From assembly GCA_037447605.1 (NCBI GenBank), contig CM074811.1, forward strand, positions 3,534,001-3,598,000: DNA of 64,000 bases, in the 5' to 3' direction. Numbering within the stretch: the first letter of the stretch is position 1; every line of letters begins with the position of its first letter. The stretch comes from Zygnema circumcarinatum SAG 698-1b (lineage: Eukaryota; Plantae; Zygnematophyceae). The notes below the pieces were generated by a model, which was not told the DNA's origin, made no database searches, and was given only the letters and a program-made list of their open reading frames with translations. The position numbers and the translations under genes are program-made. Positions 5,284 to 58,693 of the stretch are shown here, one piece after another.

Positions 5284-5371
5284 GGCATGGATCTCACGAT
5301 AGCGAGGCCATCAAATGTACATGGACAAAATTAGCATCGGGAACCACAAAGAACTAGTCGCAAAGGACCTA
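5284..5371 (-). repeat. Dispersed repeat module, copy D
   Basis: Reverse complement reads TAGGTCCTTTGCGAC...GTGGTTCCCGATGCTAATTTTGTCCATGTACATTTGATGGCCTCGCTATCGTGAG, matching copies A, B and C. Confidence 0.8.
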
Positions 5372-5507
5372 CGGAATCCCACAAAACTTGCGAATTATCA
5401 GCTCGTGCTCGGGGCCCAAGCAACGGCTTGGTATTCATGACAACTTTATTCACGACACCTTTTAGGAAAGGAAGTATAAATTTTCATGCATTGAGTTGAG
5501 GGGGGGC

Positions 5508-8500
5508 TCAAGCGGAAGCAGGCGCCGGCGGCTTCGTGAGGTGGCGGCTGAGACGAGCAGAGAGGCCCAGCGCCGTCACCTCCTCCGCGCCGACCAACGC
5601 TCTCAGCCGCTCGTCTGCTCGCGCAACACGCCCATTGGCGGGGTCCTGCAAGAGGCACCAACCTCCCTTCAATACGAATTCAGAAAGAGAACGACATATT
5701 ATTGCTTTGCATGTCATACACGACAAAAAAAATTAAAAAAAAATGTGTGCCATACATAACATATTGTGAGTGACATGAACGATATACAAAACATATACAC
5801 GATACCATATTGCCACATGACGAGCACCACAGGAGAGCACCTCTTGCAACTGCAAGCACACCTGACAGACTTTGGCACTTCACACGAAGCACGCGAGACA
5901 GCATGCACGGGTCGTGAATTGCCCGAATGAGCGTCCACCCCAGATTGGTGCTCTAAGAAGGAAGGACTGGAAGAAGAGCAAAGCCCACCTGTAGTTGCTC
6001 CTTCTTCACATACTGCCACACTAACTTCACTGCCTCTGACCTTGTGACGCGCTCAACCTGCCCAAACCCCACAGCTTCAACTCGTCAAGCCACGGCTACC
6101 TCGGGAGTCTCTCTGCTTCCAATGCCAACTTATTCAAAGGAGCAGGACCTCACCCCGCCAAGAAACTTCGAAAGTTCGGAAGATACCACCAGCATCTGCT
6201 GAACCTTTCCTTTACCAACCTGCTCTCCCTCGTCCGGGTCCCTCACAGTGGCGGCGGCTTTTTGCCTAACCACTCTAGTCTTCTTCTCCTTGCCTTTCTC
6301 TCTGCTATCCTCGACCACACTACTTCTACCCCTTCCTCCTTGGCGCTTGCTCATCCTTTCAGCCTTTCTATCCAAAAGAGTAACTGCACTATCTACAGTT
6401 ATATTCGTTGGGTCCTCCTTACTAGGCAAGGACGCCTTTATATCCCCATGACTAATATACCAACCAAAAGGACCCCTAGCTAGCTCAATTTGCCCTCCTA
6501 ATGGATGCTCTCCCACGACTTGATTAGGCGCAAAGAGAGAGAGAGCGGTAGAGAGATTCACATCCTCCGCCTGCACGCCTTTAGGCAACGGCGCTCTTCG
6601 AACTTTGTTCTTCCCTTTTGCTGCCAATTGCACATACGGACCATATGGCCCATATTGTAATGATACCTCACGACCACTTTCATCCGTTCCAAGAACTTGA
6701 ATTTCCTTGTTCTCACTGATGGTTCCCGTTTCCGTTACACCCACGCGATAACTGCCGTGGTAGAAAATTATTCAGCAAAATGTCCATTAGTCCTTGGAAT
6801 TTGCTTGATCAATGCTTCCTCAAACAGGGTTAGTAAAAATTAACGAAACTTCAACAAGAATGCCATTAGTCCTCATTGTCAGATACTGTGTTGGATCACA
6901 CCTGCAAGCTTCTCTTTTGCATCATCAAGTCCCATTATAACTACCACTTCCCCTACTACTACTACTTGGACAAAGTGGGGCAAAGAAGGCTTCTCTCACC
7001 TGCATTCCGGATACCTTGAGCACCCAAGAAAGAGGCCGGAGCCATGGCTGCTGAACTTCACCTCCACCTCTCCAGTTCCGCAGCTGCACATCATCAGAAC
7101 CAATGCCTTGGTCATTTGATGCAAGAAGCAGAAACTAAGTGGCTGCAACAAAATTCAAATTCACAGTCCACTGAATAGCGGCCTCCTCCCCTCCCTTCAA
7201 GGGTAGCAAATAGGTCCTTGACACCACCTTGGACACGTTCTGCTTCCCTTCTCATTTCCCTCCTCCGCAGGAAAAAGCTTTGGCCCAAGAATCTCTTCAA
7301 TTGCTGAAGCTACCTGTCAACAGTCAACAAGAAGAACTTTTAGTCTTTTCTCTCCTTTTTCTGCCCGTCATAACGCCCCTGTTCTTGTAAGCAGACCCTG
7401 GAGGAAGATCAGAGATGAAATTACCATTGAAGGTTCCAACTCCAACGCTTCTTGAACTGCAGGATGGAACCCCTTCCAGAATGAAGCCAACACTTCCTTC
7501 CACTCTGCTTTCCCTGCCGACACTTCATCTAACTGCATCCAAAAGGCCTCCGAACCCCTTTCTCTCCTAGTCAGACTTTTGAACTTCCTCCATTATGCGG
7601 AGCGTCATACAAGCTGGATATTGCCTCCTGCCCTCCTATCCTACGAATGCATACACTAATATCCACTCCCCCTCCTTCCGTAACTGCATGCTCACCTGCT
7701 CTTCCATCTCAGCAGTGAAGGCAGGGTCTACATAGCGCGGAAAGAAGCGCCCAAGAAAGGCTGCCACCTGCAGATACACTATCACATTGCACACTCAGAA
7801 ACAAGCCACCCAACTTGGGAAGGATTGAGTCGACTATGCACGAATAAATGGAAGCAAAAGGTTAATACATGGGTACATGAGTACATAACTATCTGAAATA
7901 TATGAACATACGCATAAATGAGCATTTGAATTACAAGAAAGCACAAAACTTACCATTCGACCACGCATCTCCGGAACCAACCGCCCCTTCTCTGATCGGA
8001 TGTACGTCCTCGTCTGCCCATAAAGAGAGCAGGAAAAACATATAGTATCATCTTTTCATGATTGACATGAAAAAATGATTTTACTTGTCTATGATCCTTT
8101 CCAAATCATGGCTATAGTGAAACAATATAGGAAAATCCTTCCCAACATTATTTTACACGGCGGTCTCAAAAAGCTTTAACATAGCACATCCCTGAAGAGT
8201 GACTGACACAAGTAGTAGTAAAACATTTGGGAACACGTTCATCCTTTCAGAATCTTAAGGCTTGCTCATACAGCTGCTGCAACATACCTGCAAAGTCTTC
8301 ATGGTGGATGCGTAGGTTGAGGGTCTTCCAACGCCTGCCTCCTCCATCTTCTTCACCTGCAGCAACCCCTACTTCTATCTTGTCACCTCTTGGGCAGAGA
8401 AAGAGTACATCCTTAAGAAACGAGCTCTCTCACGCTTTGTCACCGAATCCATTACTCTCGCAGGCCGTCTCCTTAATGTTTACACAATTTCATCCTGCTC

Positions 8501-11500
8501 AATATACAAAAACAGAGAAACCATATTCTCTTCAGAACGCATCAACTCACAAGAGTGCCTTCAGTGAAGCGGGGCGGCGGCTCCGTAAAGTGCTGCCGGG
8601 GGTCCACTGACAGTAGCTCCACTGGTTGTCCCTCCTGGAGAAAAAATGCTACGCATATGAGGGAGGGAGGGAGGGAGGGTGGGGAGGGGGCGGGGGAGGG
8701 GAGAGGGGGGAGGGGGGAGGGGCGAGGAGGGAAATGAGAGAGTGGAGGTGGGAGGAGGGCAATGGGAGGGGGAAGGGGGAAGAAAGGGGGAGGGGAGACG
8801 AACAGGAGGGGGGGAGAAACGGGATGGAGGGGGGAGGAAGGTGGGCGGTGGGAGGAGTGGGGAGGGCGGAGGGGGGAAGGAGGGGGGATGGGGAAATGGG
8901 AAGGGGCGGGAGGGAGGGATCGTCGAACAAGGAAGGCAATCTGTACCTTGAGGTAGCCCAGCTGACTGTATTGGCTGCTCTCCTCCTCCGCACTCATTTC
9001 CGGCTTCGCTGCAAGTGCTGATGCATCCTGGGAGCCCCTCCCCTCCCTTTCGCCAAATAAGTCTCTGCTCCCAGTAAGCCGTTACTGAAACAGCTATGCG
9101 AGCGGGAACAAAAAGAGAATATAACAAAGGCGTACCTGTTGTGGGGCTAAGCACCCCATAAAGGACACCTTGGAACTGCTGCTATGAAGGCGAACCCCCT
9201 CGCCCTTGTCGCCAACATCGACTGCCACCTGTCACCCTCTCCAGTTCAGATCTTTCACCTCCCCAGTGTCTAAACTGAGGCATAACCTGTCAAAGGCACA
9301 AGGCCCTCACAGAACCTGCCTGGAGGATACGAGAGGGTATACACAGCAGTTAACTTCCTACAAGCGTGCAAGTACATTGGCTGTAAAGCAGAATTGTTTT
9401 TCAGGCACATGCTCGACTTCACAGTTCTCCTCCCGCTTCTCGTCTGCTCGCCCTCTCCCTTCCTCAACCCCCACCAACTATCTCCAGCCACTCCTCCTCC
9501 TTCCTCTCAACCTTTCCTTTCCTTGAAAGCTTGCAAACAATTGGATCTTACCAGAGAGATAACTGCATTGCTCATCTGACAGGCAACACTGCGAGCCCAA
9601 ATGAGTCGGTAGAGTCGAAGCTCATCTTCCGCTAACTCCCCCTTCAGCGTGGCTGCCCTTCATCCCTCCAGCCACAAAAAAAAAAAAAAAAACCCAAAAG
9701 CGCCACATAGAACACCGTTAATCCCCACTCTCCAGAGAAGGTCAGGGAGAAAACTTAGGTTTGAAGTGTTGCACATCCTAGAAAAACTCTTCGTACCCTC
9801 AACTCCCAAGGAGAGCCAAGCGGGGGAATCAAACAATCAAACACCCCATGAAAATTTTGAATATTTTTAAAGAAGAGAGAGAGAGAGGCAGAGAGTGAGA
9901 GAGGGAGAGAAGGAAAGAGAGAGAGAGAAAGCGAGAGAGAAGTGAGGGAGAGAGAGTACGGGAGAGGGCTAAACTCAGCACGTACATGGCAGCTTGAAGG
10001 GGTCAGTGGTCCGTATGGCTTCATGGGCTTCTTGCGCGTTTTTTATTTTGCTTTTGTACACACGAGGTACATCCGAAACATAGTCTGCTCCGTAACTGCA
10101 ACCAACTCTCCTCAGAAAGTGAGCAAGTTTGAAAAATAAGTCGATGATGCAAGCATAGTGCAGAATAATCTGCGTTGAAACATGAACAAGGGCTATGTTT
10201 CTGCCACCTACCGTTCAGTGACAAGTTTGCGCAAAGCCTGAACTGCGACTGGTGAGAGCTGCATTGCGATGGTTTCGCTTGTCAGATAGTTCACATGAGT
10301 AGCATGCAAGAGAGGTTCATGGCTCAGTACATACGTAACGAAACGGAAAAGCAAGCTCGCCCTAATGCATTCTGATAAAGTTGTGGGCACCTGCGTACTG
10401 TCCGTACGCATGTATGTGATGAGTCCTCCATGTTTCCCGACTCCTTCATACAATTTTTGGGCAGCCTGCACCACTCCACAATGAAGACTTCACTCCTCTC
10501 TCCTCTCTCTCCGCCTTACATGATCATCTGGACAAACCTACCTCCTAACTTTCCCATGTAAATACTCGTCGTAACCCCTCCCTCTTTCCTGCCCCTTCCC
10601 CTTTCACTCCCACCCTATTGAACAACCAAAAAGAGCCCAAAACTCCCAAGTTTCCTGAGAGTTTCGTTCAGAGTTTGGAAGGATTCACGGCTTCTCACCG
10701 CCATCGTTCGCGACGAGCCGAAACCGAGCTTGCTAGATGCATCCTGCTGCAGTGTAGATGTGGTATATGGAGCTGCAGGACTTCTCTGCCTGCTGCTGTA
10801 CTTCACATTTTCCACCACCAATGTGCAAGATTCGACAGCCTGAACAGCCAACTTGGCTGCCTTCTCACTGCCTATGGCTTTGGGTTCAAGCTTCCTCCCA
10901 TCCATGTTAGTTAGAAGAGCCGAAAAATCGCCTCCAGAAGCTCTCAACTTAGCTTCCACTGACCAGTGTTCCTGCCGCTTAAATGCCTCAATTTCCGCCT
11001 CCCTTTCACAAACAAACCCAAGAGCTACAGATTGAACTCTGCCTGCACTTTTACTCCCAGGAAGTTTTCGCCACAATACAGGGGAGAGGTCAAAGCCCAT
11101 TAGGAAGTCGAGTGCCCGTCTGGCCATATAAGCCTCCACTAAAGGAGTGCTCACTTCCCTGGGCTGCGCCATGGCTTCCTTCACAGCTGAGGAGGTAATT
11201 TCATTGAAGCAGACTCTCTGCACCAACTGCTCACGCTGCAGAATTCCCGACTCTCGCAGAGTTTCCAGAACGTGCCATGCTATAGCCTCCCCCTCCCGGT
11301 CGGGGTCCGTCGCGAGGATGAGGCCTTTGGCTCTGCAACCATTTCTCTGTAACAGTTGTGTCTTAACCAAAGAATTGCAACAGAACAGTGACTTTGCAGA
11401 AAAGTGAGCAGTGGTTTGGAAGACGAGGACTGAAGGCACCACGTTACAAACGTTTCAAAACCAATCAGATAGCAGGCTAATGTGGGCGGAACAACAACTG

Positions 11501-40432: not shown

Positions 40433-43400
40433 TCACTGGCGCCGTTGTCTCTTTATCCGTTCCAAAGCCCCCAGGGGCTCCTCCCGCTCCCTCTCCTTCT
40501 CTTGGAGCTCGTTGGCTTTCCCGGCAAGCGCCCCATACACCGCATCAGGAACCTGCTTCTGGGCCAACTCCATGTCCGGTTCCTCACCACCCTCTGCCTT
40601 TTCCACTCCCTCTCCCTCCTCGTCCTCCTCCAGCTCGATCTCTTCAGGGTTGGCAGCCACCGGAGCCTGTGCCTGTCCTTCCCGCCCTGCGCTCACAAAC
40701 TGTGGCACCCTCTGCTGCGGAGCCGCAGCTGCCACTTGCCTTTCCAAGGCCGCCATGTCATCCTCCGGCATGCCCGGCCTCCCTGCCTCTCCCTCTCCCT
40801 CTCCCTCCCGTGCTCCGGCCCCGGGAGCGGGGCCGGGCTGCGCCGCCTTCTGCATGAGGTACTCCGGCAGGATAAAATGCATCTGCACACGTACACATCG
40901 AATCAGTTAAAGCACCATTGACTGTCGTTTCGTTCAGTTTTCATGAGCAGGTCAGACATTCTGCTCATGGGAACGCAGCCTTGACTAAAGCCAAAACAGA
41001 AGAAGTAACCCTACCTCCTTTTCCATGCCTGCGCTTTTGCACACCATAGGGTAGCAAAAGCAGATGCTGAGGATTGATGCATGCATGCTCCTGCTTGATC
41101 CCTTGACAAGGAGAGAAACAAGGGCCGCAAAGAGGAACTGAGGCGCGCGGGAGAGGAGTGAGTGACCTGGCTGTAGCTGGCGGACACGCTGCGCTTGATT
41201 CGCAGCATTTCACGAAACGTGTCCTCGTTACCGTGAGCGATCTCAAACGCATTCCAAGTCTCCCAGAACACGGCGTCAGAGCGGGGGTCTGCCAGCTGCG
41301 CTGCATAGGTGTAGATTCCGCGAGCGCGGTCGATCTCCCCCAGCTTGCGCTCCAACGCTGCGTACTTGAGGCACATGTTCTTCACGTCACCATCTGGAAG
41401 CCCGGATTCAATGGCTCTCTGAACCCCCTCCCCCAACACCCCACAATGATCAAGTCAGACACTTATCCCACCCTGCCAAACAATAGCTCTATCCCGTAGC
41501 GTACAACAATGTGGGAAAGTTCGCATTGAGCTATCCCGGAATATACTGAGTGATCAGAAGACAACCACCATTTCACCAGAAGAAGGAGAAGCCGCAGATA
41601 GTCTAAAATGCTGTTCGTTTGCCACTTCACTTCTTATTGATGTGAAACGGCATGAATTCGCCCATTCACACCATGCGCAGGCAGGAGGCAAAATGCAATG
41701 AATAGCCACTTCTGTGGTGGATGCTCCTGATCTATACAGCTCTAAACGGAAGAACTAAATCCCGACAACCTCAACAAATGCTGAAGCTTGAATGCAAAAG
41801 GGGCAATCCTCACATCATAAATCTCACGAGTCCTTGAAATGCCAAAGAACTCCGCTGCACGGGCAATGTAGATCTCAAACACGCTGAGCTTCTCGGCGTT
41901 TGGAACAGCCTTGGTCGCACGATCGTAGACAGCCATAGCATGCTTTGCTAAACCGTACTCCTCCTCCAGCTTCGCATATTGCAGGTACAATACCTTGCAC
42001 TCGTCGGCTGGGGCCTAACATATTCCGACACAACCAAAAACAAAGAATTAACCAATCGAAGGCTTCCACAACGTCCAATATACAGGTAAAGAAGGAAGGG
42101 GCCTTGCACAGTTACCGTATGCTCCCCAAGTGATACTGAGCTTGCACACTGAGCTTGCATTGCGTGCCCTTGCAGATGCTGAAGGAAGGGAGGAACACAA
42201 TGCACAGAAAGAGATGCGGTGTATCTAAACCGAGGGATATAGGGATCATCAGTACCTGTTCCAAAGCCTGTTCAAACAGGTCTCTAGCTCGTTCCATCTT
42301 TCGTCCACCATATCTCTGAACAAATTTCGTGAGATAGGCTGTCCAAATATCCTTGACATGGGGGTACTTGAAAATATGAACACCTCTCTCATAAGCTTTG
42401 AATGCATCCTCGAAGTAAGAACTTTCCTGCTCCCATGAACAACCCAATTGTTCAAATTAGCAAACACTTTACAAAATCAATGGAACTCTGTGAGTCTAGA
42501 ACGAGATGCCCCAAAACTTAGGCGGTACCTCTTCAGTTTACAAAGACTATGCAATGGAAAGCATTGCAGCAGCATATGTAACCGCTTGTATACGTGAAGG
42601 CAAGTGGCCAGATGCGTGACTGGAACTCTAGAACATTCAAATAGATCAGCAGACTAATGTGGAGGCGATAGATTAATTTGAGATGATCAGCTCGTTCAAC
42701 CAAACGCTTCTATTCACCTATTTCATTATTCTGGCAGACAATTGGAAGTGACTTGGGATAAATTACCTCCAGAAGAAGGGCGTAATTGATGATAATCTGA
42801 GGAGTGGCAATCTTGAGGTCCAAAATCCGCTCATAGAGGACTCTAGTCGTCTCAAGCGTCCCCAGACTTTCCTCCAAGTCCACATAGAAAGACCAAAGCT
42901 TTAAGCTACGGTGCACACGCAGTTGCACTCTCTCGTCACCCTCCGACGCAGCTGCACAAATCAAGCTATTTCACGTGAAATGCTGTTCAATTCACCAGGT
43001 GTGCTTTCAATAGGGTTGTCACAGAGCCAACGGCCTTTTGTCAACCGCGAAACGTCCTAATTCCGCAATCCCCATGATGGCTGCCGATGCATCCCTGTTT
43101 TTGGTTCCACATCTTGACAGAAGAGGTTGTCCACAAAAAATGCCTGAGGAGGTTTCTTGTTTGAGGTCAAACTCCCTCACATGCTCAAGAACAATCGGGG
43201 ATGAGGCAACTAGCTACCGCATTTAATGTGCGAAAAAAAAACCCGATGAATGCCCCTGGCACCTACACGTGAGCAGCACCAAGTGTACTTTTCTAGCAGC
43301 CTAGTTTACAGACAGATAAGTTGCAGTTCTCACCTTTTCTCCGAACAGCTGCTGAAGGTTCTGCTGTGGCACGTTTCATGAGCTCCCGAGCACCTGCAAA

Positions 43401-44843
43401 ATTTTTCCCACGCAATTCCATTTCTGCCCACTCACACCAAATAGCTGCTAGGTCATCGGCTGCCTTATATTCGGCTTGAACTGCCTTCTCCATGATCAAG
43501 CGCGCATTTGGAAGGTCTCCATGTTCCTCGTAGAGCCGTGCAAACTTCACCCAAAGTGTATGCACCTTTCCAACTGCCTTATGCGGGTCAACTGTCTTCA
43601 CCGCTTCAGTGTAAGTCAAAATCTGCTTTGCAGGATGAGAGGTGAAAAGCTTGGCACGTTTGTGCCACTCATGAACATTATGCGGATTTTGCCGAAGTAG
43701 AACACTACTTACAAGTTCTGGTCGACGCTCTAAAAGCAAGTCAAGCCGTGCAATGCGCAGGTCCAAGTCATCTGAGTCATGCAGCCAGTCATGGCTGTCA
43801 TCCTCATCCTCTTCCACAGACTTGTGACCGTTCAGCCCCTTGCTACTCAATGCGAGTTTTCGTCTCTCTTCTCTCCTCCGTTCTTCCTCCTCCAACATCT
43901 CTATTTTTGCTGCTAACATGCTCTCTTCAAATTGAGTGTAGGCGTCAAAAATCATGCTAAAGTCCCGCACAGTGATGACGCTCATCATTCCCTCCTCGTA
44001 AACATCGCGAGCGTTCTCAAAGAGACCTCGACGGATATAAAAATCTGCTAAGGACGTCCAAAGGCGTCCGACCTCGTCACTAAACTTCCTAAGGCCTCCT
44101 CTAATGATAGCATCCACTTTCAAACCCTTCACTTCCGTTGCATGTTTGGTCAGCAAGTCGCAAAGCTCTAACCACAGCTGGTGCTTGCTCTTCCCTTTGA
44201 AGGATGTAAACTCCTCGTCATTCAAAACCTGAGCTAGACGTTCAGCTGCCTCTTGCCACATCTCTGACTTTATAAGAAAGTCGATGTACTCTTCTACTTG
44301 CGTTGGTTCCAACTTCAAATACCTCCTATACACACGCAAAGCAGTCTCCACCGGGACCTCCTCCTGCCTCACAAATTGCAAATAAAGCTCCCATATTCGA
44401 TCGTGCTGCGTTGCTGGCAATGAACAAAGAGCACGATCAAAGCTTCGCCGCGTTCGAACTATCAACTTCTGGTCCATGAGAATTTGAAGATAGAGAAGCC
44501 ATATCCGAGGCATTTTGTGCATAGTCACCAGTGCACGTTCAAATGTATTGCTGAGAGCTGCCCAAGCAGAATGCGTGATGCACAGGCCCCTCACTGCAGC
44601 CATTCGTTCTAGCAGGTATGCATGCCATAGCTTGTAACTTCCTGGAAGAGCGTGCAGACCACGCTCATATATGAGATAACGCTTCTTTACAGGAGAGTCC
44701 CGCCGGGCGTGCAGGTAACGCCACCACAGCTTCAACGAGAAGGGGTTGCGGAGAATCTCTTCCTCGTAAAGGAGGTCTTCTTCCGAAGGCAGAAGCGATT
44801 CAGGAAGCGGAGCTGCTGGCGTGGTTGCTTCCGAGATGCCCAT
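40433..44843 (-). CDS. SYF1: Pre-mRNA splicing factor SYF1/XAB2 (HAT-repeat protein)
   Basis: EEDLLYEEEILRNPFSLKLWWRY, YKLWHAYL, FERALVTMHKMPRIW, LLRQNPHNVHEW, RSLKLWSFYVDLEES, YERGVHIFKYPHV, ERARDLFEQA, HGNEDTFREMLRIKRSV, NPEEIEL. First in-frame ATG is 44843; the ORF track begins at a TTG. Confidence 0.96.
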
Positions 44844-45248
44844 AATTGGAAGAGAGAGGAGAGCCAAGACGGAGAGGAGAGCGAGAGAGAAAAAGAGAGA
44901 GAGGCACCACAGCAGGCCGCGAAGAGGGAGAGAGAGAGATAGGCGGAAAGAGGGAGAGGAAATACCGTGAGCATAGCCTGAAACTATTTACATTTCAAGC
45001 CTTTCAGCTCCATGTGCTTCCAAACGTTCGTGCGCAGTTGTGGTTCTGTTTGACGCTAAACTTCTGAATGATCGACATAGAGCGAAAGTGCATATGTGCT
45101 TACGCACTGGAACTGGATGCAGCGAACGAAAAGGGCCTCGCCTGGTCCTTTGGCGGTTCTTGCTTCCTACGAGAGGGACGTGAGGGAGGGCAGGAGAAGG
45201 GCAGGGGCTGCAGGAAGGGGGGGGCTCGCCTCGCCTCGCCTCGCCGCA

Positions 45249-55259: not shown

Positions 55260-58200
55260 TTAGCTTTGCTCCCCCAGCCATCCCTTCAGACCATGTTTTG
55301 GGCGACTAACCTCCACCCTCCTGCGATATTCTGCTATGGCGCTTGGCCCCACCCAAACACGACCCTTGTTGGACTCCAACTGGGCGTAATGCATCCTGTC
55401 CATGGGTCACATAATTGATGTGAGACCTATGGATGAAGCTACGTCTGAAATCAATAAGTCAAATCAAATCAGTTTCAACAAGCATCAGGCAAGCAGATGA
55501 TTTCAAAACAAAGCAACTTTGACTGCAGTTCATCCTCCATTTGCTTGAATATATTTGTCACGTACCCTAGTTGGGATAGCTGCTCCAAAATGGATGCTTG
55601 CACCACAGAGATACGGTTGTGACTCCCCCTGCAACGTGAAGGGAGAGTGTGCGAGCAACCGATCATACAAAGAAATCCAAACAGAGGTCGGGCTTCATAA
55701 GAACATTAACCGAAGGTAATCTGCCACTGAAGAGGTATCTCCCCAAGCAGGGCAGGTTCTACAGCAATGGGCAGACACTGAAGGTGCAAAGGGCGTGACA
55801 TGTGCAGTTTTCATTGATAGGGAGGAAATATTAAATTTCCGATGCATTAAGCCCGCGTTAAGAGAGCCTGAAGTCATCTGCTACATGCCATGCTCTTCAA
55901 GTTTGAAAATAGGGCCTGACTCTTCAGGTACATTGGCCAGGGAGGGCAAGGAAAACTGTACTCACCTGCCTACACCTGTGATAATAACAAGCCCCTCAGT
56001 CTCATCTGCATCATCGTGATCCACCAAACCCAACCTCTTGCTGTGAACTGGTCTATGTTTGCCAAAATCTCGCGAAAAAAGGTGCTCCTCCTTTGCTTTC
56101 AATGATCTCAGCTGAATGGATAATCATTCTAGGGACTACGAACGTGTTCTCTCTGTCAAAGTTTCACATGATAGTTGCCAGCCAGACGTCTACAATCCTA
56201 AATCCAGCTTTCTTCGTCCTGGATGAAATTCTTGCTTTTTGTGATCGCAAAAAGTACCTCTTGGTTCCGTGGAGGAGAGAAGCAACTGCTCCAAAGACTG
56301 GGAGAGAAGAATCCTGCACAGCCATTCAACCACACCCACAACATTGTCACCTGTATCCGCAGCCAAACAGATAAGCACGCACCTCAAATCCAAGAAATTA
56401 TACCTACCACCCGCGCAGGATGTATTGCTTGCTCTTCTCGACTGAATTCGCAGCGACTTTTCTGTCAGTTTGGCAAATGCCTACCTGCTCTCCACAGCCG
56501 AGTAGCCATGCAGGTCCAGCATGCGATACAAGCCGCAAGCGAGAGAGCCGGCTGCCTCTGTCACGCGTAACCTCACTTCCCTATCTCCTCGTTTAGAGAG
56601 TTGTCTGAACTTTGGAGTGTTTGCTGCCCTCCAAGACTTAGCATGCAGGGTGGTCACGCTGTCACACGAGGGGGGCTCCTTCAGGCTGCCCGGGCTGTGT
56701 TTTTCCTCTTTAATTCCGGAAGACGTGAAGGTCTCTGACGGTGAAGTAAAGTGTGCAGTTCTCTTATCGCCATTCTCCCTGTCTGTACAGCGCTTCCTAT
56801 CTCTATCTTCATAAAGCATGTCTTGTGAAGTCATGCGTTCTACATTCGATATCAGTCCACTGGCAGCATCCTTTCCCTCTTCTCTACTATGACTCAGTCC
56901 CATTTCCTCCCTTGACCGCCTTTCTGCAGGGCTTCCCTTGGTTGACGGGCTGCTTTGCTGCTGCAACAGTGAATGCTTAGTGGCGGATGATGTAGCGATG
57001 CAGCTTTCAAGTTCATGCCAGAGATCTGCAGGCAGTGTTGGCAAGTGTCGGAAGGCAGTCATAAGGGTACTCCGCGTTACCTGACCTTCCAGGGTAAAAT
57101 TCAGTAAATGATGTCAATAAAAAAAAAACATGCTTTTAAAGCATGTAATGTCGACATAAGCCCGAAACCGGACCATTACTCCATACCATCCCCAAAGCCC
57201 GTAATCTGGAGCTGGTCAAGAGATTACCTTATCAGGAGCCATCCCTGCTGCTTTCATAGACTCCCACAAGGCCAGTGCTGCATCAGTATCTCCTTTACGA
57301 GCATATGCGTCTAGAATTGTGTTGTACGTTATGAGGTCGGGTTTTATTCCGTGAATCTTCATATCTTGCAGTAGTCGAAAAGCGCCATCAGGCTCTGCTG
57401 CTTTCGCAAAGGCCGCAACTAAAGTGTTGTACGTTGTCTGCAGGAAGGAGAATCAGAAACAGCAGTCAGAGCTCCAGAATTTCTGATCAAAAGAGACAAA
57501 AATATTTCTGTCCCAATGCTGATACACGCCAATCGAAATTCTCTAGAGAGCGCCATAAACATTATTCTTGGGTACATTATTTCTAAGCTTATTGGGTTTA
57601 AATTAAAAAAAATAGTGTGGCCCCCACATTGCTGGAAATGCTAGATAGCCAAACAAACAGTTTCATTTCGATACAAGATGCAAAAGTTGTGTGGTTATAT
57701 GTAATGTCATTTCTTTGTTAAATTCATTTAAAGAAAGTGAAAAGAAATCATGCATAAATTGGGGTTGCATAAATTTGTACGGGCTCCGACATGTTTATCG
57801 AAGGTTACATAAACCAGTGTGGCCCACAGTCTTGAGCACACACTCACTGCACGCATACTAAATGTGATGGCCAGTGTATATGACTCACTGATCCGGGAAA
57901 AGCTCGCAGCACGAGTGCATGCAATTGGGCGGAATGAGCTCACCAAGTTTGGCGGCACATTGCTTTCCTTCATCTTTTCGAGCACTCCCAAGGCCTTACC
58001 AACGTGGCCCTGCCTCGCCCAGGCGTGCATGAGTGCATTCATGGTCACGACGCTCGGTTGCATGCCCTGTGAAGCCATAGACGAAACAACGCCCGCAGCT
58101 TCTTGCGGATAACCTCCTTTTCCAAGCACTGAAATCATGGCGGAGAACACGTGCTGATTAGGGTGAAGGCCACAGACTTCCAGCTCTTTGAACAGCCTGC

Positions 58201-58693
58201 GAGCACGCAATACTTGGTCCTCCGTGACATTGGATGAGCCACACAGCGCAATGCGGGCAGTAAACATCCAGAGCATCGGCCGCCCTCCCGCAGCATTATA
58301 GCGCTTCACAAGAGACTCCGTTCGACGTTGCTGGCGACGCGCGACAGCCTCTTTAATCGCTGCCAGCAGCTGAGGAAAGGAGAGGCTTTCTTCAAATTTT
58401 CGTCCCGAATCCCACTCCTCTCTCTTGCTGCTCTCGTCCTCTCGAACATCATTCGAAATTCTTGCAGAGGAAGCGAAGAACTTCCAGGGAGGACACGACG
58501 CGTTCCACGAGTTCAAGCCATGGCTCCTTTCCTGCAACAAAGAATGTAGGGCAGCGGGGATTCCGAGGTCAGCAAGCCCTGGCGGGACGACGCGCGCGTG
58601 CGGGGGCGCCATGGCGGCGAGCAGGGCGCGCCTTGCCCTTGCGGCGGCCATGGCGGGAGCTCGCATGGACTGTCCATGGCGGAACATGGCCAT
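55260..58693 (-). CDS. PPR-SMR protein (P-type PPR repeats plus C-terminal Smr domain)
   Basis: PPR units VFSAMISVLGKGG..., TMNALMHAWARQG..., TYNTLVAAFAKA..., TYNTILDAYARKG...; Smr LDLHG (~56500), LVIITGVG (~55980), ...NKGRVWV...LKGWLGEQS*. The start may lie further upstream (~58880). Confidence 0.88.

Follow-up and report, generated by a model that had tools for sequence, protein, structure and literature searches.

An expressed streptophyte-algal gene couples an alphaproteobacterial-type topoisomerase IA to a C-terminal SWIB domain

The 64,000-nucleotide stretch of the Zygnema circumcarinatum SAG 698-1b contig CM074811.1 analysed here (the window) carries a eukaryotic gene with introns whose product is a topoisomerase IA of bacterial type with an in-frame SWIB domain. 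Such a gene had been proposed from the letters of the DNA, and the proposal is now borne out by the domain content of the individual exons, by transcript-like contigs and by an open reading frame. The reading that we favor, to which we assign a probability of roughly 0.8, is that the alga, a streptophyte, has here a functional nuclear gene for an organellar TOP1 of alphaproteobacterial type with a C-terminal SWIB domain, that the fusion was likely born within the streptophytes, and that the SWIB domain has a docking role, which is proposed below. The gene is a real, expressed, eukaryotic version of a fusion type that was already known, probably with an independent origin.

Results

The coding region lies on the minus strand (5508..11989) and, as defined by translation and contig-supported introns, comprises 18 exons, 2904 nt and 967 codons, from the ATG at 11989 to the TGA at 5510-5508. 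All 18 exons are free of stop codons in translation, and their summed coding length is divisible by three. Sixteen of the 17 introns are GT..AG introns that are spliced out in RNA-type contigs, the removal of the one at 9653-9985 being read from contig pieces rather than from a listed joint; the exception is intron 1 (11345-11606), whose putative donor at 11606 was placed by inference. The RNA label of the sequencing runs is itself a guess; that they are RNA is read from the splicing-out of these 16 introns.

The domain order of the protein is Toprim, Topoisom_bac, one zinc ribbon, two Toprim_C_rpt repeats, a basic linker and SWIB. Exon 1 (11607..11989) encodes a Ser/Ala/Lys-rich extension of ~58 residues, a presumed organelle presequence, followed by the start of Toprim (Pfam profile 2-55) with its conserved Glu in the motif VVESPAKA. 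Exon 2 (10699..11344) completes Toprim (2.2e-9), including the acidic motif DPDREGE, and contains the first 150 residues of Topoisom_bac (PF01131, 6e-37), while exon 3 (10391..10465), with RNA-supported introns on both sides, carries the active-site tyrosine motif ITYMRTDS. The hallmarks of a type IA TopA, namely the Toprim Glu and DxD acidic motif, the Topoisom_bac core and the active-site Tyr, are all present, and the catalytic acidic residues and tyrosine are intact. A single C4 zinc ribbon (CP.C ... C....EC), recognized by tblastn and by its motif in the translation rather than by a Pfam scan, is encoded by exons 14 and 15 together with their intron (7000..7313). It is divided between 7228-7313 and 7000-7083 by a phase-2 intron, and alphaproteobacterial TopAs align over 7535-6987 in tblastn. 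The main part of exon 16 (6202..6751) contributes the two Toprim_C_rpt repeats (PF13368, E 3.6e-24) and then a Lys/Arg-rich linker of ~55 residues.

The SWIB domain is distributed over the last three exons. Its start (S.EL..FLGG) is encoded by the last 16 codons of exon 16 (6154..6201), which align with the sequence SPQLASFLGG at the start of a fused SWIB from Mesotaenium endlicherianum, and with plant SWIBs. In Pfam scans made exon by exon rather than on the joined domain, exon 17 (5989..6057) matched the SWIB profile (PF02201) at positions 16-37 (E 6.4e-6, 26.3 bits, with a cut-off of 25 bits), and the coding part of exon 18 (5508..5645), which closes with a short Pro/Ala tail before its stop codon, matched it at positions 38-74 (E 4.6e-4, 20.3 bits). 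That the profile coordinates of the two exons adjoin is not expected by chance. In an alignment of 22 rows (A5), the window pieces keep 13 of 13 nearly invariant SWIB columns, and the conserved core residues L, G, R, W, Y, LQDP, R, D, L and H are retained. The complete SWIB/MDM2-type domain of the original prediction is recovered, with its start in exon 16 and its remainder in exons 17 and 18. A PDB sequence search with exon 18 alone returned chance matches only. Modeling was carried out on the Mesotaenium fused SWIB rather than on the window's own domain, and predicts a SWIB fold (pLDDT 86) that superimposes on 1v31 with a TM-score of 0.83 and an rmsd of 1.4 Å, on 1uhr with 0.81 and on MDM2 with 0.75-0.81.

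The TopA-SWIB fusion is the main form of the transcript. Intron 16 (6058..6153; 96 nt, GT..AG) and intron 17 (5646..5988; 343 nt, GT..AG) are both removed in transcript-like contigs from four runs belonging to three studies, and both joints are as deep as the neighboring exons (132-343). The repeat exon is bridged to both SWIB exons within single contigs: X1 record 1, X3 record 12 and X6 record 19 each consist of 5390/5350-5644, exon 17 and 6152-6755. The 3' untranslated region extends at least over 5390..5507, with some contigs reaching further downstream. As had been proposed, the three exons join in phase 0 at canonical sites, with exon 16 ending at 6154, exon 17 spanning 6057-5989 and exon 18 spanning 5645-5508. 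The junctions given as 6152/6057 and 5989/5645 are both found in the transcript-like contigs, with a correction to one base: position 6152 is the T of the donor GT (6153-6152), and the exon ends at 6154. The in-frame stop expected at 6130 in the unspliced reading is also present, at 6132-6130 inside intron 16, but rather than ending there the contigs splice on to the SWIB exons. No retention of intron 16 was seen among the contigs listed, and the last intron is retained in one listed contig (5619-6017, depth 4.2, run X2). The mRNA is spliced into a single product of 967 residues.

By identity and C-terminal architecture, the enzyme part is of alphaproteobacterial type, as is the organellar TOP1 known from green plants, rather than chlamydial. 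Exon 2 shares 54-59% identity with TopA of Alphaproteobacteria, as against 40-42% with chlamydial TopA-SWIB, and in the core tree the enzyme of the window falls in a clade with Alphaproteobacteria and green-lineage TopAs (SH-aLRT 94). Full-length TopAs are colinear with 9-11 window exons in tblastn, and the summed scores are 664-734 bits over 9-11 exons for Alphaproteobacteria versus 333-408 for Chlamydiota. The C-terminal layout of one zinc ribbon followed by Toprim_C_rpt is that of chlorophyte TopAs and of the alphaproteobacterial P0032, which has one ribbon, three repeats and a Lys tail; the Chlamydiota TopA loci have three zinc ribbons, no Toprim_C_rpt and a SWIB. In an AU test on 217 columns from one exon, the grouping of exon 2 with Chlamydiota was not rejected (p 0.13). 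According to published work (PMC4166229), the type IA TOP1 of green plants goes back to alpha-proteobacteria and AtTOP1 has dual targeting; this origin and targeting fit the core of the window protein. As far as the enzyme is concerned, the suggested trace of chlamydial ancestry is not supported by exon 2 identity, by C-terminal architecture or by the published origin. The TOP1 proteins of green plants (Arabidopsis At4g31210, Klebsormidium kfl00696_0070), compared via the literature rather than by sequence, are likewise nuclear-encoded and alphaproteobacterial-type with an N-terminal extension, and no SWIB was reported on an angiosperm TOP1 in the literature examined.

A second streptophyte alga has the same arrangement. 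A partial gene model from Mesotaenium endlicherianum (P0006; jgi Mesen1 ME000132S00452) contains two Toprim_C_rpt repeats and a SWIB (6e-21), and this SWIB is the nearest to that of the window, with 38 of 71 residues identical compared to at most 30 of 65 for any other. Identity to P0006 is 57% in exon 17 and 51% in exon 18, and the window SWIB exons form a clade with the Mesotaenium SWIB (98/85). On the evidence of the gene models, the fusion is common to the window and Mesotaenium.

When 1.84 billion protein representatives were searched with exon 16, the nearest relatives were alphaproteobacterial fragments and P0006, the latter being the one SWIB-bearing match among the 150 listed; no close orthologue of the window protein was among the matches listed. 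In a word-index search, a profile built from P0051, P0006 and the long window exons recovered TopAs of chlorophytes and Alphaproteobacteria, and its 120 best matches included neither a SWIB nor a land plant. In two further word-index searches, matches to P0006 residues 120-461 were dominated by low-complexity linker words and the P0006 SWIB alone matched only itself; since targets were 0.55-1.75 times the query length, exon-sized queries miss full-length fusions, and these blanks say little on bryophytes or land plants. A search for ESM Atlas look-alikes of P0006 gave no usable match, and a metagenome scan with the Mesotaenium SWIB gave a single, uninformative contig (L081) with a SWIB that has no topoisomerase nearby. 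The alignment with all exons as rows (A4) was left unused because MAFFT smeared the short exons. No publication describing a streptophyte topoisomerase-SWIB fusion was found in the literature.

The TopAs of Chlamydia trachomatis (CT643 / CTL0011) and of the other Chlamydiota examined (L022, L043, L058, L052) likewise combine a canonical type IA Toprim and Topoisom_bac core with a C-terminal SWIB after a flexible region. Theirs, however, is a different TopA lineage, with three Zn_ribbon_Top1 fingers in place of one ribbon and two repeats; the genes are bacterial, without introns or presequence, and their SWIB groups with chlamydial stand-alone SWIBs. The C. trachomatis enzyme relaxes DNA, and an allele with SWIB deleted still complements E. 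coli (PMC12445093). Two Burkholderiales-labelled loci (L070, L023) also encode Toprim, Topoisom_bac, C-terminal repeats and a terminal SWIB, but the topoisomerase belongs to a remote branch of type IA (25% identical to exon 2), its repeats are PF13342 rather than PF13368, and its SWIB falls within a group of stand-alone SWIBs from proteobacteria and Bdellovibrionota. Chlamydiae are a home of TopA-SWIB but not the sole one, given these two genomes and the Mesotaenium gene model. In Chlorella sorokiniana (P0186) and Micractinium (P0166, P0169), the enzyme is of the same type as in the window, with one zinc ribbon and two Toprim_C_rpt repeats, yet two HMG boxes stand at the position of the SWIB. 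The HMG box is a eukaryotic chromatin module. In land plants, SWIB-2, -3, -4 and -6 also place a SWIB beside a basic DNA-binding stretch and act on organelle nucleoids, according to PMC4758235 and PMC4154389, which cite Melonek et al. 2012; as described there, they are small stand-alone proteins, whereas the SWIB of the window is fused.

Discussion

Three explanations other than a fusion born within the streptophytes have to be weighed. The gene might be no true fusion at all, with a TopA gene and a small neighboring SWIB gene joined by occasional read-through or by an assembly error. Without splicing, the frame does run into a stop after 22 nt of intron 16, and one low-depth contig does keep the last intron, but the depth of the joints equals that of the flanking exons in all four runs, the 96-nt intron is too short to house a promoter, exon 17 has no ATG while the domain begins inside exon 16, and the Mesotaenium model has the same arrangement. 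An artifact of this kind is thus hardly credible. A more serious possibility, although still very unlikely in our estimation, is that the SWIB or the whole arrangement was transferred from a chlamydial TopA-SWIB, the core having later been replaced or having diverged. This would agree with the trees in that the bacterial SWIBs closest to the eukaryotic ones are those of Chlamydiota, and AU tests on 75 columns did not reject trees in which the Mesotaenium SWIB joins the fused SWIBs of Chlamydiota (p 0.46 and 0.68); nor, as noted above, was the grouping of exon 2 with Chlamydiota rejected. In one AU run the chlamydially constrained tree was even better than the quick free tree, and by these tests the quick tree does not settle a plant origin of the SWIB. 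Conversely, besides the identity of the core and its ribbons and repeats, in the best trees a split (95/91) sets the fused SWIBs of the streptophytes, together with plant SWIBs, apart from all 42 bacterial rows, the plant SWIBs in these trees being a single protein, P0270. A second SWIB tree, which includes the window exons, puts the streptophyte pair in the same plant-side neighborhood. The window pieces are 33-36% identical to chlamydial fused SWIBs versus 38-46% to plant and other bacterial SWIBs, and they lack a one-residue insertion after VFG that is found in four of four aligned chlamydial TopA-fused or Chlamydiaceae SWIBs. For the SWIB itself, the evidence on a chlamydial trace is divided, with trees that favor the plant side and AU tests that leave the chlamydial grouping unrejected.

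It could alternatively be supposed that the SWIB came not from a host nuclear SWIB but from a bacterial stand-alone gene, for example an alphaproteobacterial one, possibly via the mitochondrial ancestor. Bacteria commonly have stand-alone SWIBs, Sphingomonadales, Caulobacterales and Acetobacteraceae among them, and the scores of the window pieces are slightly better with several of these SWIBs (141-153, with 26-30 identities) than with plant P0270 (123-138, with 23-26 identities). Such a source nevertheless seems improbable in view of the same plant-side placement in the careful trees and of the eukaryotic HMG boxes at the same position in the chlorophyte relatives. Bacterial fused SWIBs each group with stand-alone SWIBs of their own lineage. 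The fusion most likely arose within streptophytes, separately from the topoisomerase-SWIB fusions of Chlamydiota and Betaproteobacteria.

For this streptophyte-born enzyme, the following mode of action can be proposed. The N-terminal extension would route the protein to plastids, mitochondria or both, and its task there would be the relaxation of negative supercoils. The basic linker may add DNA affinity. The SWIB may tether the enzyme to a partner in the nucleoid or in transcription, and so do what the last repeat and the lysine tail did in the bacterial ancestor. SWIB is a peptide-binding fold. The suggestion that the gene provides a Rosetta-stone link between nucleoid SWIB proteins and supercoil relaxation is a reasonable inference.

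A 2025 study of C. trachomatis TopA states that SWIB-containing TopAs are absent beyond Chlamydia, and reviews of plant nucleoids call the bacterial SWIB a chlamydial peculiarity. The pairing thus held to be unique to Chlamydia now turns up in an expressed eukaryotic gene whose TopA part is of another lineage, in one more streptophyte alga and also in genomes labelled as Burkholderiales. This offers a comparative handle both on what SWIB does for topoisomerases and on what SWIB proteins do in organelle nucleoids, in an algal system that may be easier to handle than an obligate intracellular pathogen. Repeated independent fusion is a classic sign of two modules working together. A bolder and, in our view, unlikely reading is that SWIB works directly, and recurrently, with type IA topoisomerases, with at least three independent fusions (in Chlamydiota, in Burkholderiales-type bacteria and in streptophyte algae, with HMG boxes at the same position in chlorophytes), and that the streptophyte fusion is ancestral, the stand-alone organellar SWIBs of land plants having arisen from it by gene fission. 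Were this the case, nucleoid compaction proteins would be mechanistically tied to supercoil relaxation. Finally, the HMG boxes of the variant found in Chlorella-type algae suggest that a swap of the bacterial C-terminal tail for chromatin modules of the host is general among organellar TopAs.

The gene model and its terminal SWIB domain

Exon-by-exon translation resolves the minus strand from 11989 to 5508 into a single gene of 18 exons (2904 nt, 967 codons), which runs from an ATG at 11989 to a TGA at 5510-5508 with consistent phases and no internal stops. Intron borders were taken from spliced contigs and then adjusted to GT..AG; intron 1 (11345-11606), outside the stretch compared with sequencing runs, was placed from sequence and homology. 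Domains were assigned with Pfam, each exon being handled singly. On the minus strand, exon 1 (11607-11989) carries the first half of Toprim, exon 2 (10699-11344) the end of Toprim (2.2e-9) together with Topoisom_bac (6e-37), and exon 16 (6154-6751) two Toprim_C_rpt repeats (3.6e-24). The translations contain, for Toprim, the Glu and DxD motifs; exon 3 has the active-site tyrosine motif ITYMRTDS, and only one C4 zinc ribbon is present, divided between exons 14 and 15. Upstream of Toprim lie approximately 58 residues that are rich in Ser, Ala and Lys and nearly lack acidic residues, and this segment appears to resemble an organelle presequence.

Also on the minus strand, exon 17 (5989-6057) matches positions 16-37 of the Pfam SWIB profile (6.4e-6; 26.3 bits, with a cut-off of 25), and exon 18 (5511-5645) matches positions 38-74 (4.6e-4). 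Because these adjoining profile halves are matched in the correct order and in phase 0, there is strong evidence that the two exons encode parts of a single SWIB domain. The domain starts with S.EL..FLGG, encoded by the final 16 codons of exon 16 and aligned to the equivalent motif of Mesotaenium endlicherianum and plant SWIBs. Of the columns that hardly vary in a 22-row SWIB alignment, the window keeps 13 of 13. The original prediction that three exons form a complete, in-frame SWIB domain on the topoisomerase is thus borne out.

Splicing and expression

A run search returned six runs from one organism and three studies, each of which matches 39-56% of the words sampled from the 6.8-kb gene, a fraction close to its exon share. 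Four of these (X1, X2, X3 and X6) were compared with 5350-11300. Their library records do not state RNA; the contigs are taken as cDNA because 16 canonical introns are missing from them. The 15 listed joints occur in all four runs, all bordered by CT..AC in plus-strand reading (GT..AG on the gene strand). After the shifts stated for them, joints 5644|5988 and 6055|6152 correspond to introns 5646-5988 and 6058-6153, so that both proposed SWIB junctions are used in four of four runs. Joint depths (132-343) equal those of the adjacent exons, single contigs from X1, X3 and X6 span the 3' UTR, exon 18, exon 17 and the complete exon 16, and the last intron is retained in one listed contig only (X2, depth 4.2). 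The gene is therefore real and expressed, with the fused product as its main form. The in-frame stop at 6132-6130, at which transcripts might instead have ended, lies within an intron.

Two other introns drew attention. In intron 8357-8550, one contig per run, in all four runs, matches just the 52 bases at 8474-8525 and continues into unrelated sequence at both ends; these bases are probably a short stretch common to another transcribed locus. Intron 8635-8946 (312 nt) consists almost wholly of C and T when read on the gene strand (8650-8930); it gives long proline-rich pseudo-ORFs, and contigs seem to be cut there, repeats having been skipped.

A related fusion in Mesotaenium

Among the 150 listed matches to exon 16, only one, P0006, has a match to the SWIB exons as well (52-54% identity). 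This partial Mesotaenium endlicherianum gene model (jgi Mesen1 ME000132S00452) is laid out as two Toprim_C_rpt repeats, a long linker with many charged residues, and a SWIB domain (6e-21). Its SWIB is the nearest to that of the window, with 38 of 71 aligned residues identical, followed by the best other SWIBs at approximately 45% (30 of 65-67) and the chlamydial fused SWIBs at 33-36%. Entered as separate tree rows, exons 17 and 18 both group with Mesotaenium (98/85), and the TopA-SWIB fusion is therefore common to two streptophyte algae. The fold was modeled on the Mesotaenium fused SWIB: the model, from a 22-row alignment, has a pLDDT of 86 and matches the SWIB of Arabidopsis At5g14170 (TM 0.83, rmsd 1.4 Å), as well as BAF60 SWIBs and MDM2. 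No description of a eukaryotic TopA-SWIB fusion was found in the accessible text of literature naming both SWIB and topoisomerase; the fusion is already visible in the public Mesotaenium gene model.

Origin of the enzyme and of the fused domain

A trace of chlamydial ancestry had been suggested as one possibility for the fusion. For the enzyme part this is unsupported. Exon 2 is 54-59% identical to named alphaproteobacterial TopAs, 43-54% to eukaryote-like TopAs, including those of Chlorella and Micractinium, 40-42% to Chlamydiota TopA-SWIB proteins, and 25% to the Burkholderiales-labelled topoisomerase-SWIB proteins. In a tree of the exon 2 region, the window falls inside a clade of Alphaproteobacteria and chlorophyte TopAs (SH-aLRT 94), while Chlamydiota form a separate clade (99); forcing the window to join them costs 19.7 log-likelihood units, though the AU test on 217 columns of this one exon does not reject that grouping (p 0.13). 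When tblastn scores against the window are summed, alphaproteobacterial proteins reach 664-734 bits over 9-11 exons, among them those of the zinc ribbon and the repeats, versus 333-408 bits for chlamydial proteins, in the core only. The alphaproteobacterial C-terminal layout, one zinc ribbon followed by Toprim_C_rpt, is that of the window, whereas Chlamydiota have three zinc ribbons and lack the repeats. For exon 16, no close orthologue was found among 1.84 billion representatives searched; the best matches reach 35-42% identity, all named ones being alphaproteobacterial fragments. As far as sequence comparison can tell, these data agree with the published derivation of green-plant type IA TOP1, present in all plants and algae examined and dual-targeted in Arabidopsis, from alpha-proteobacteria (PMC4166229); At4g31210 has also been classed as proteobacterial (PMC3493653).

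For the SWIB part, chlamydial ancestry is unproven. In a careful tree, Mesotaenium and three SWIB domains of a single plant protein (P0270) split from 42 bacterial rows (95/91); the chlamydial fused SWIBs have the chlamydial stand-alone SWIBs as their sister group (98/90 and 97/89), and the Burkholderiales fused SWIBs lie among proteobacterial and Bdellovibrionota stand-alone SWIBs. A second tree, with the window exon rows, gave similar placements. Every fused SWIB is thus nearest to SWIBs of its own organism type, the pattern predicted by independent fusions. The Mesotaenium branch, however, is very long, and joining it to the chlamydial fused clade is not rejected by AU tests (p 0.46 in the careful set; p 0.68 in a large set, in which the constrained tree even outscored the quick free tree). 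The enzyme part and the architecture are the main reasons why an independent origin of the streptophyte fusion is nonetheless likely; the fused SWIB itself may have come from the host, from Chlamydiae or from other bacteria.

SWIB domains and fusions in bacteria

More than 582 SWIB-coding stretches turned up in a pattern scan that took one genome for each prokaryotic species; the groups represented include Bdellovibrionota, Patescibacteria, Sphingomonadales, Caulobacterales, Elusimicrobiota and Chlamydiota. This spread far exceeds the "Chlamydia only" picture of plant nucleoid reviews. In most cases the domain is a small stand-alone gene, mostly of 85-190 residues; it ends long ORFs in seven cases, namely five Chlamydiota-type TopAs and two Burkholderiales-labelled MAGs. 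Four of the five Chlamydiota-type proteins scanned as Toprim, Topoisom_bac, three zinc ribbons and SWIB. The Burkholderiales-labelled loci, L070:1118-4207 and L023:1262-4222, encode Toprim, Topoisom_bac and two Toprim_Crpt (PF13342), and end in SWIB (E 1e-27 and 3e-26). SWIB-containing TopAs have been stated to be absent from prokaryotes beyond Chlamydia (PMC12445093), a statement with which these two loci conflict if other type IA enzymes count. In an Elusimicrobia ORF, L015:3278-4207, a PRiA4_ORF3 domain (6e-56) is followed by a C-terminal SWIB (2e-28).

Apparent exchange of the C-terminal end and possible function

TopAs of Chlorella sorokiniana and Micractinium (P0186, P0166, P0169, P0170) share the window's layout up to the repeats, with one zinc ribbon and two Toprim_C_rpt, but end in two HMG boxes where the window has SWIB. 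A further eukaryote-like relative, P0051, breaks off at the apparent start of an HMG box, and in P0032, which is alphaproteobacterial, three repeats and a lysine-rich tail stand where the green TopAs have HMG boxes or SWIB. The bacterial C-terminal end thus seems to have been exchanged for host chromatin modules in organellar TopAs of the green lineage, apparently for SWIB in streptophyte algae and for HMG boxes in trebouxiophytes.

As translated, one expressed protein combines an intact type IA catalytic core and DNA-binding C-terminal elements with a basic linker and, beyond it, a complete SWIB domain. TopA relaxes negative supercoils and contacts DNA and partner proteins through its C-terminal regions; SWIB/MDM2 domains have short helical peptides as ligands. 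TopA of C. trachomatis relaxes DNA, and its SWIB-deleted allele complements E. coli yet slows chlamydial growth under stress (PMC12445093). Organellar SWIB proteins of land plants are located in nucleoids (PMC4758235, PMC4154389). The algal protein would be imported into plastids and/or mitochondria, where SWIB, probably dispensable for catalysis, may dock the topoisomerase on a nucleoid or transcription partner. Since the fusion recurs in three lineages, the suggested Rosetta-stone link between SWIB and topoisomerase appears strengthened.

Other features of the window

Copia-type retroelement ORFs lie on opposite strands at 19618-20478 (plus; RVT_2 reverse transcriptase, 1e-68) and 21526-23601 (minus; gag-pre-integrase, integrase and SH3-like polyprotein). 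On the minus strand, a SYF1-type pre-mRNA splicing factor, represented by one long exon (43293-44867; HAT repeats, 2e-85), and a PPR-repeat ORF (57728-58876) are ordinary plant-lineage nuclear genes. The stretch 60001-62000 (62% G+C, GC skew +0.59), with long ORFs overlapping on both strands (59863-61374), is probably a G-rich simple repeat.
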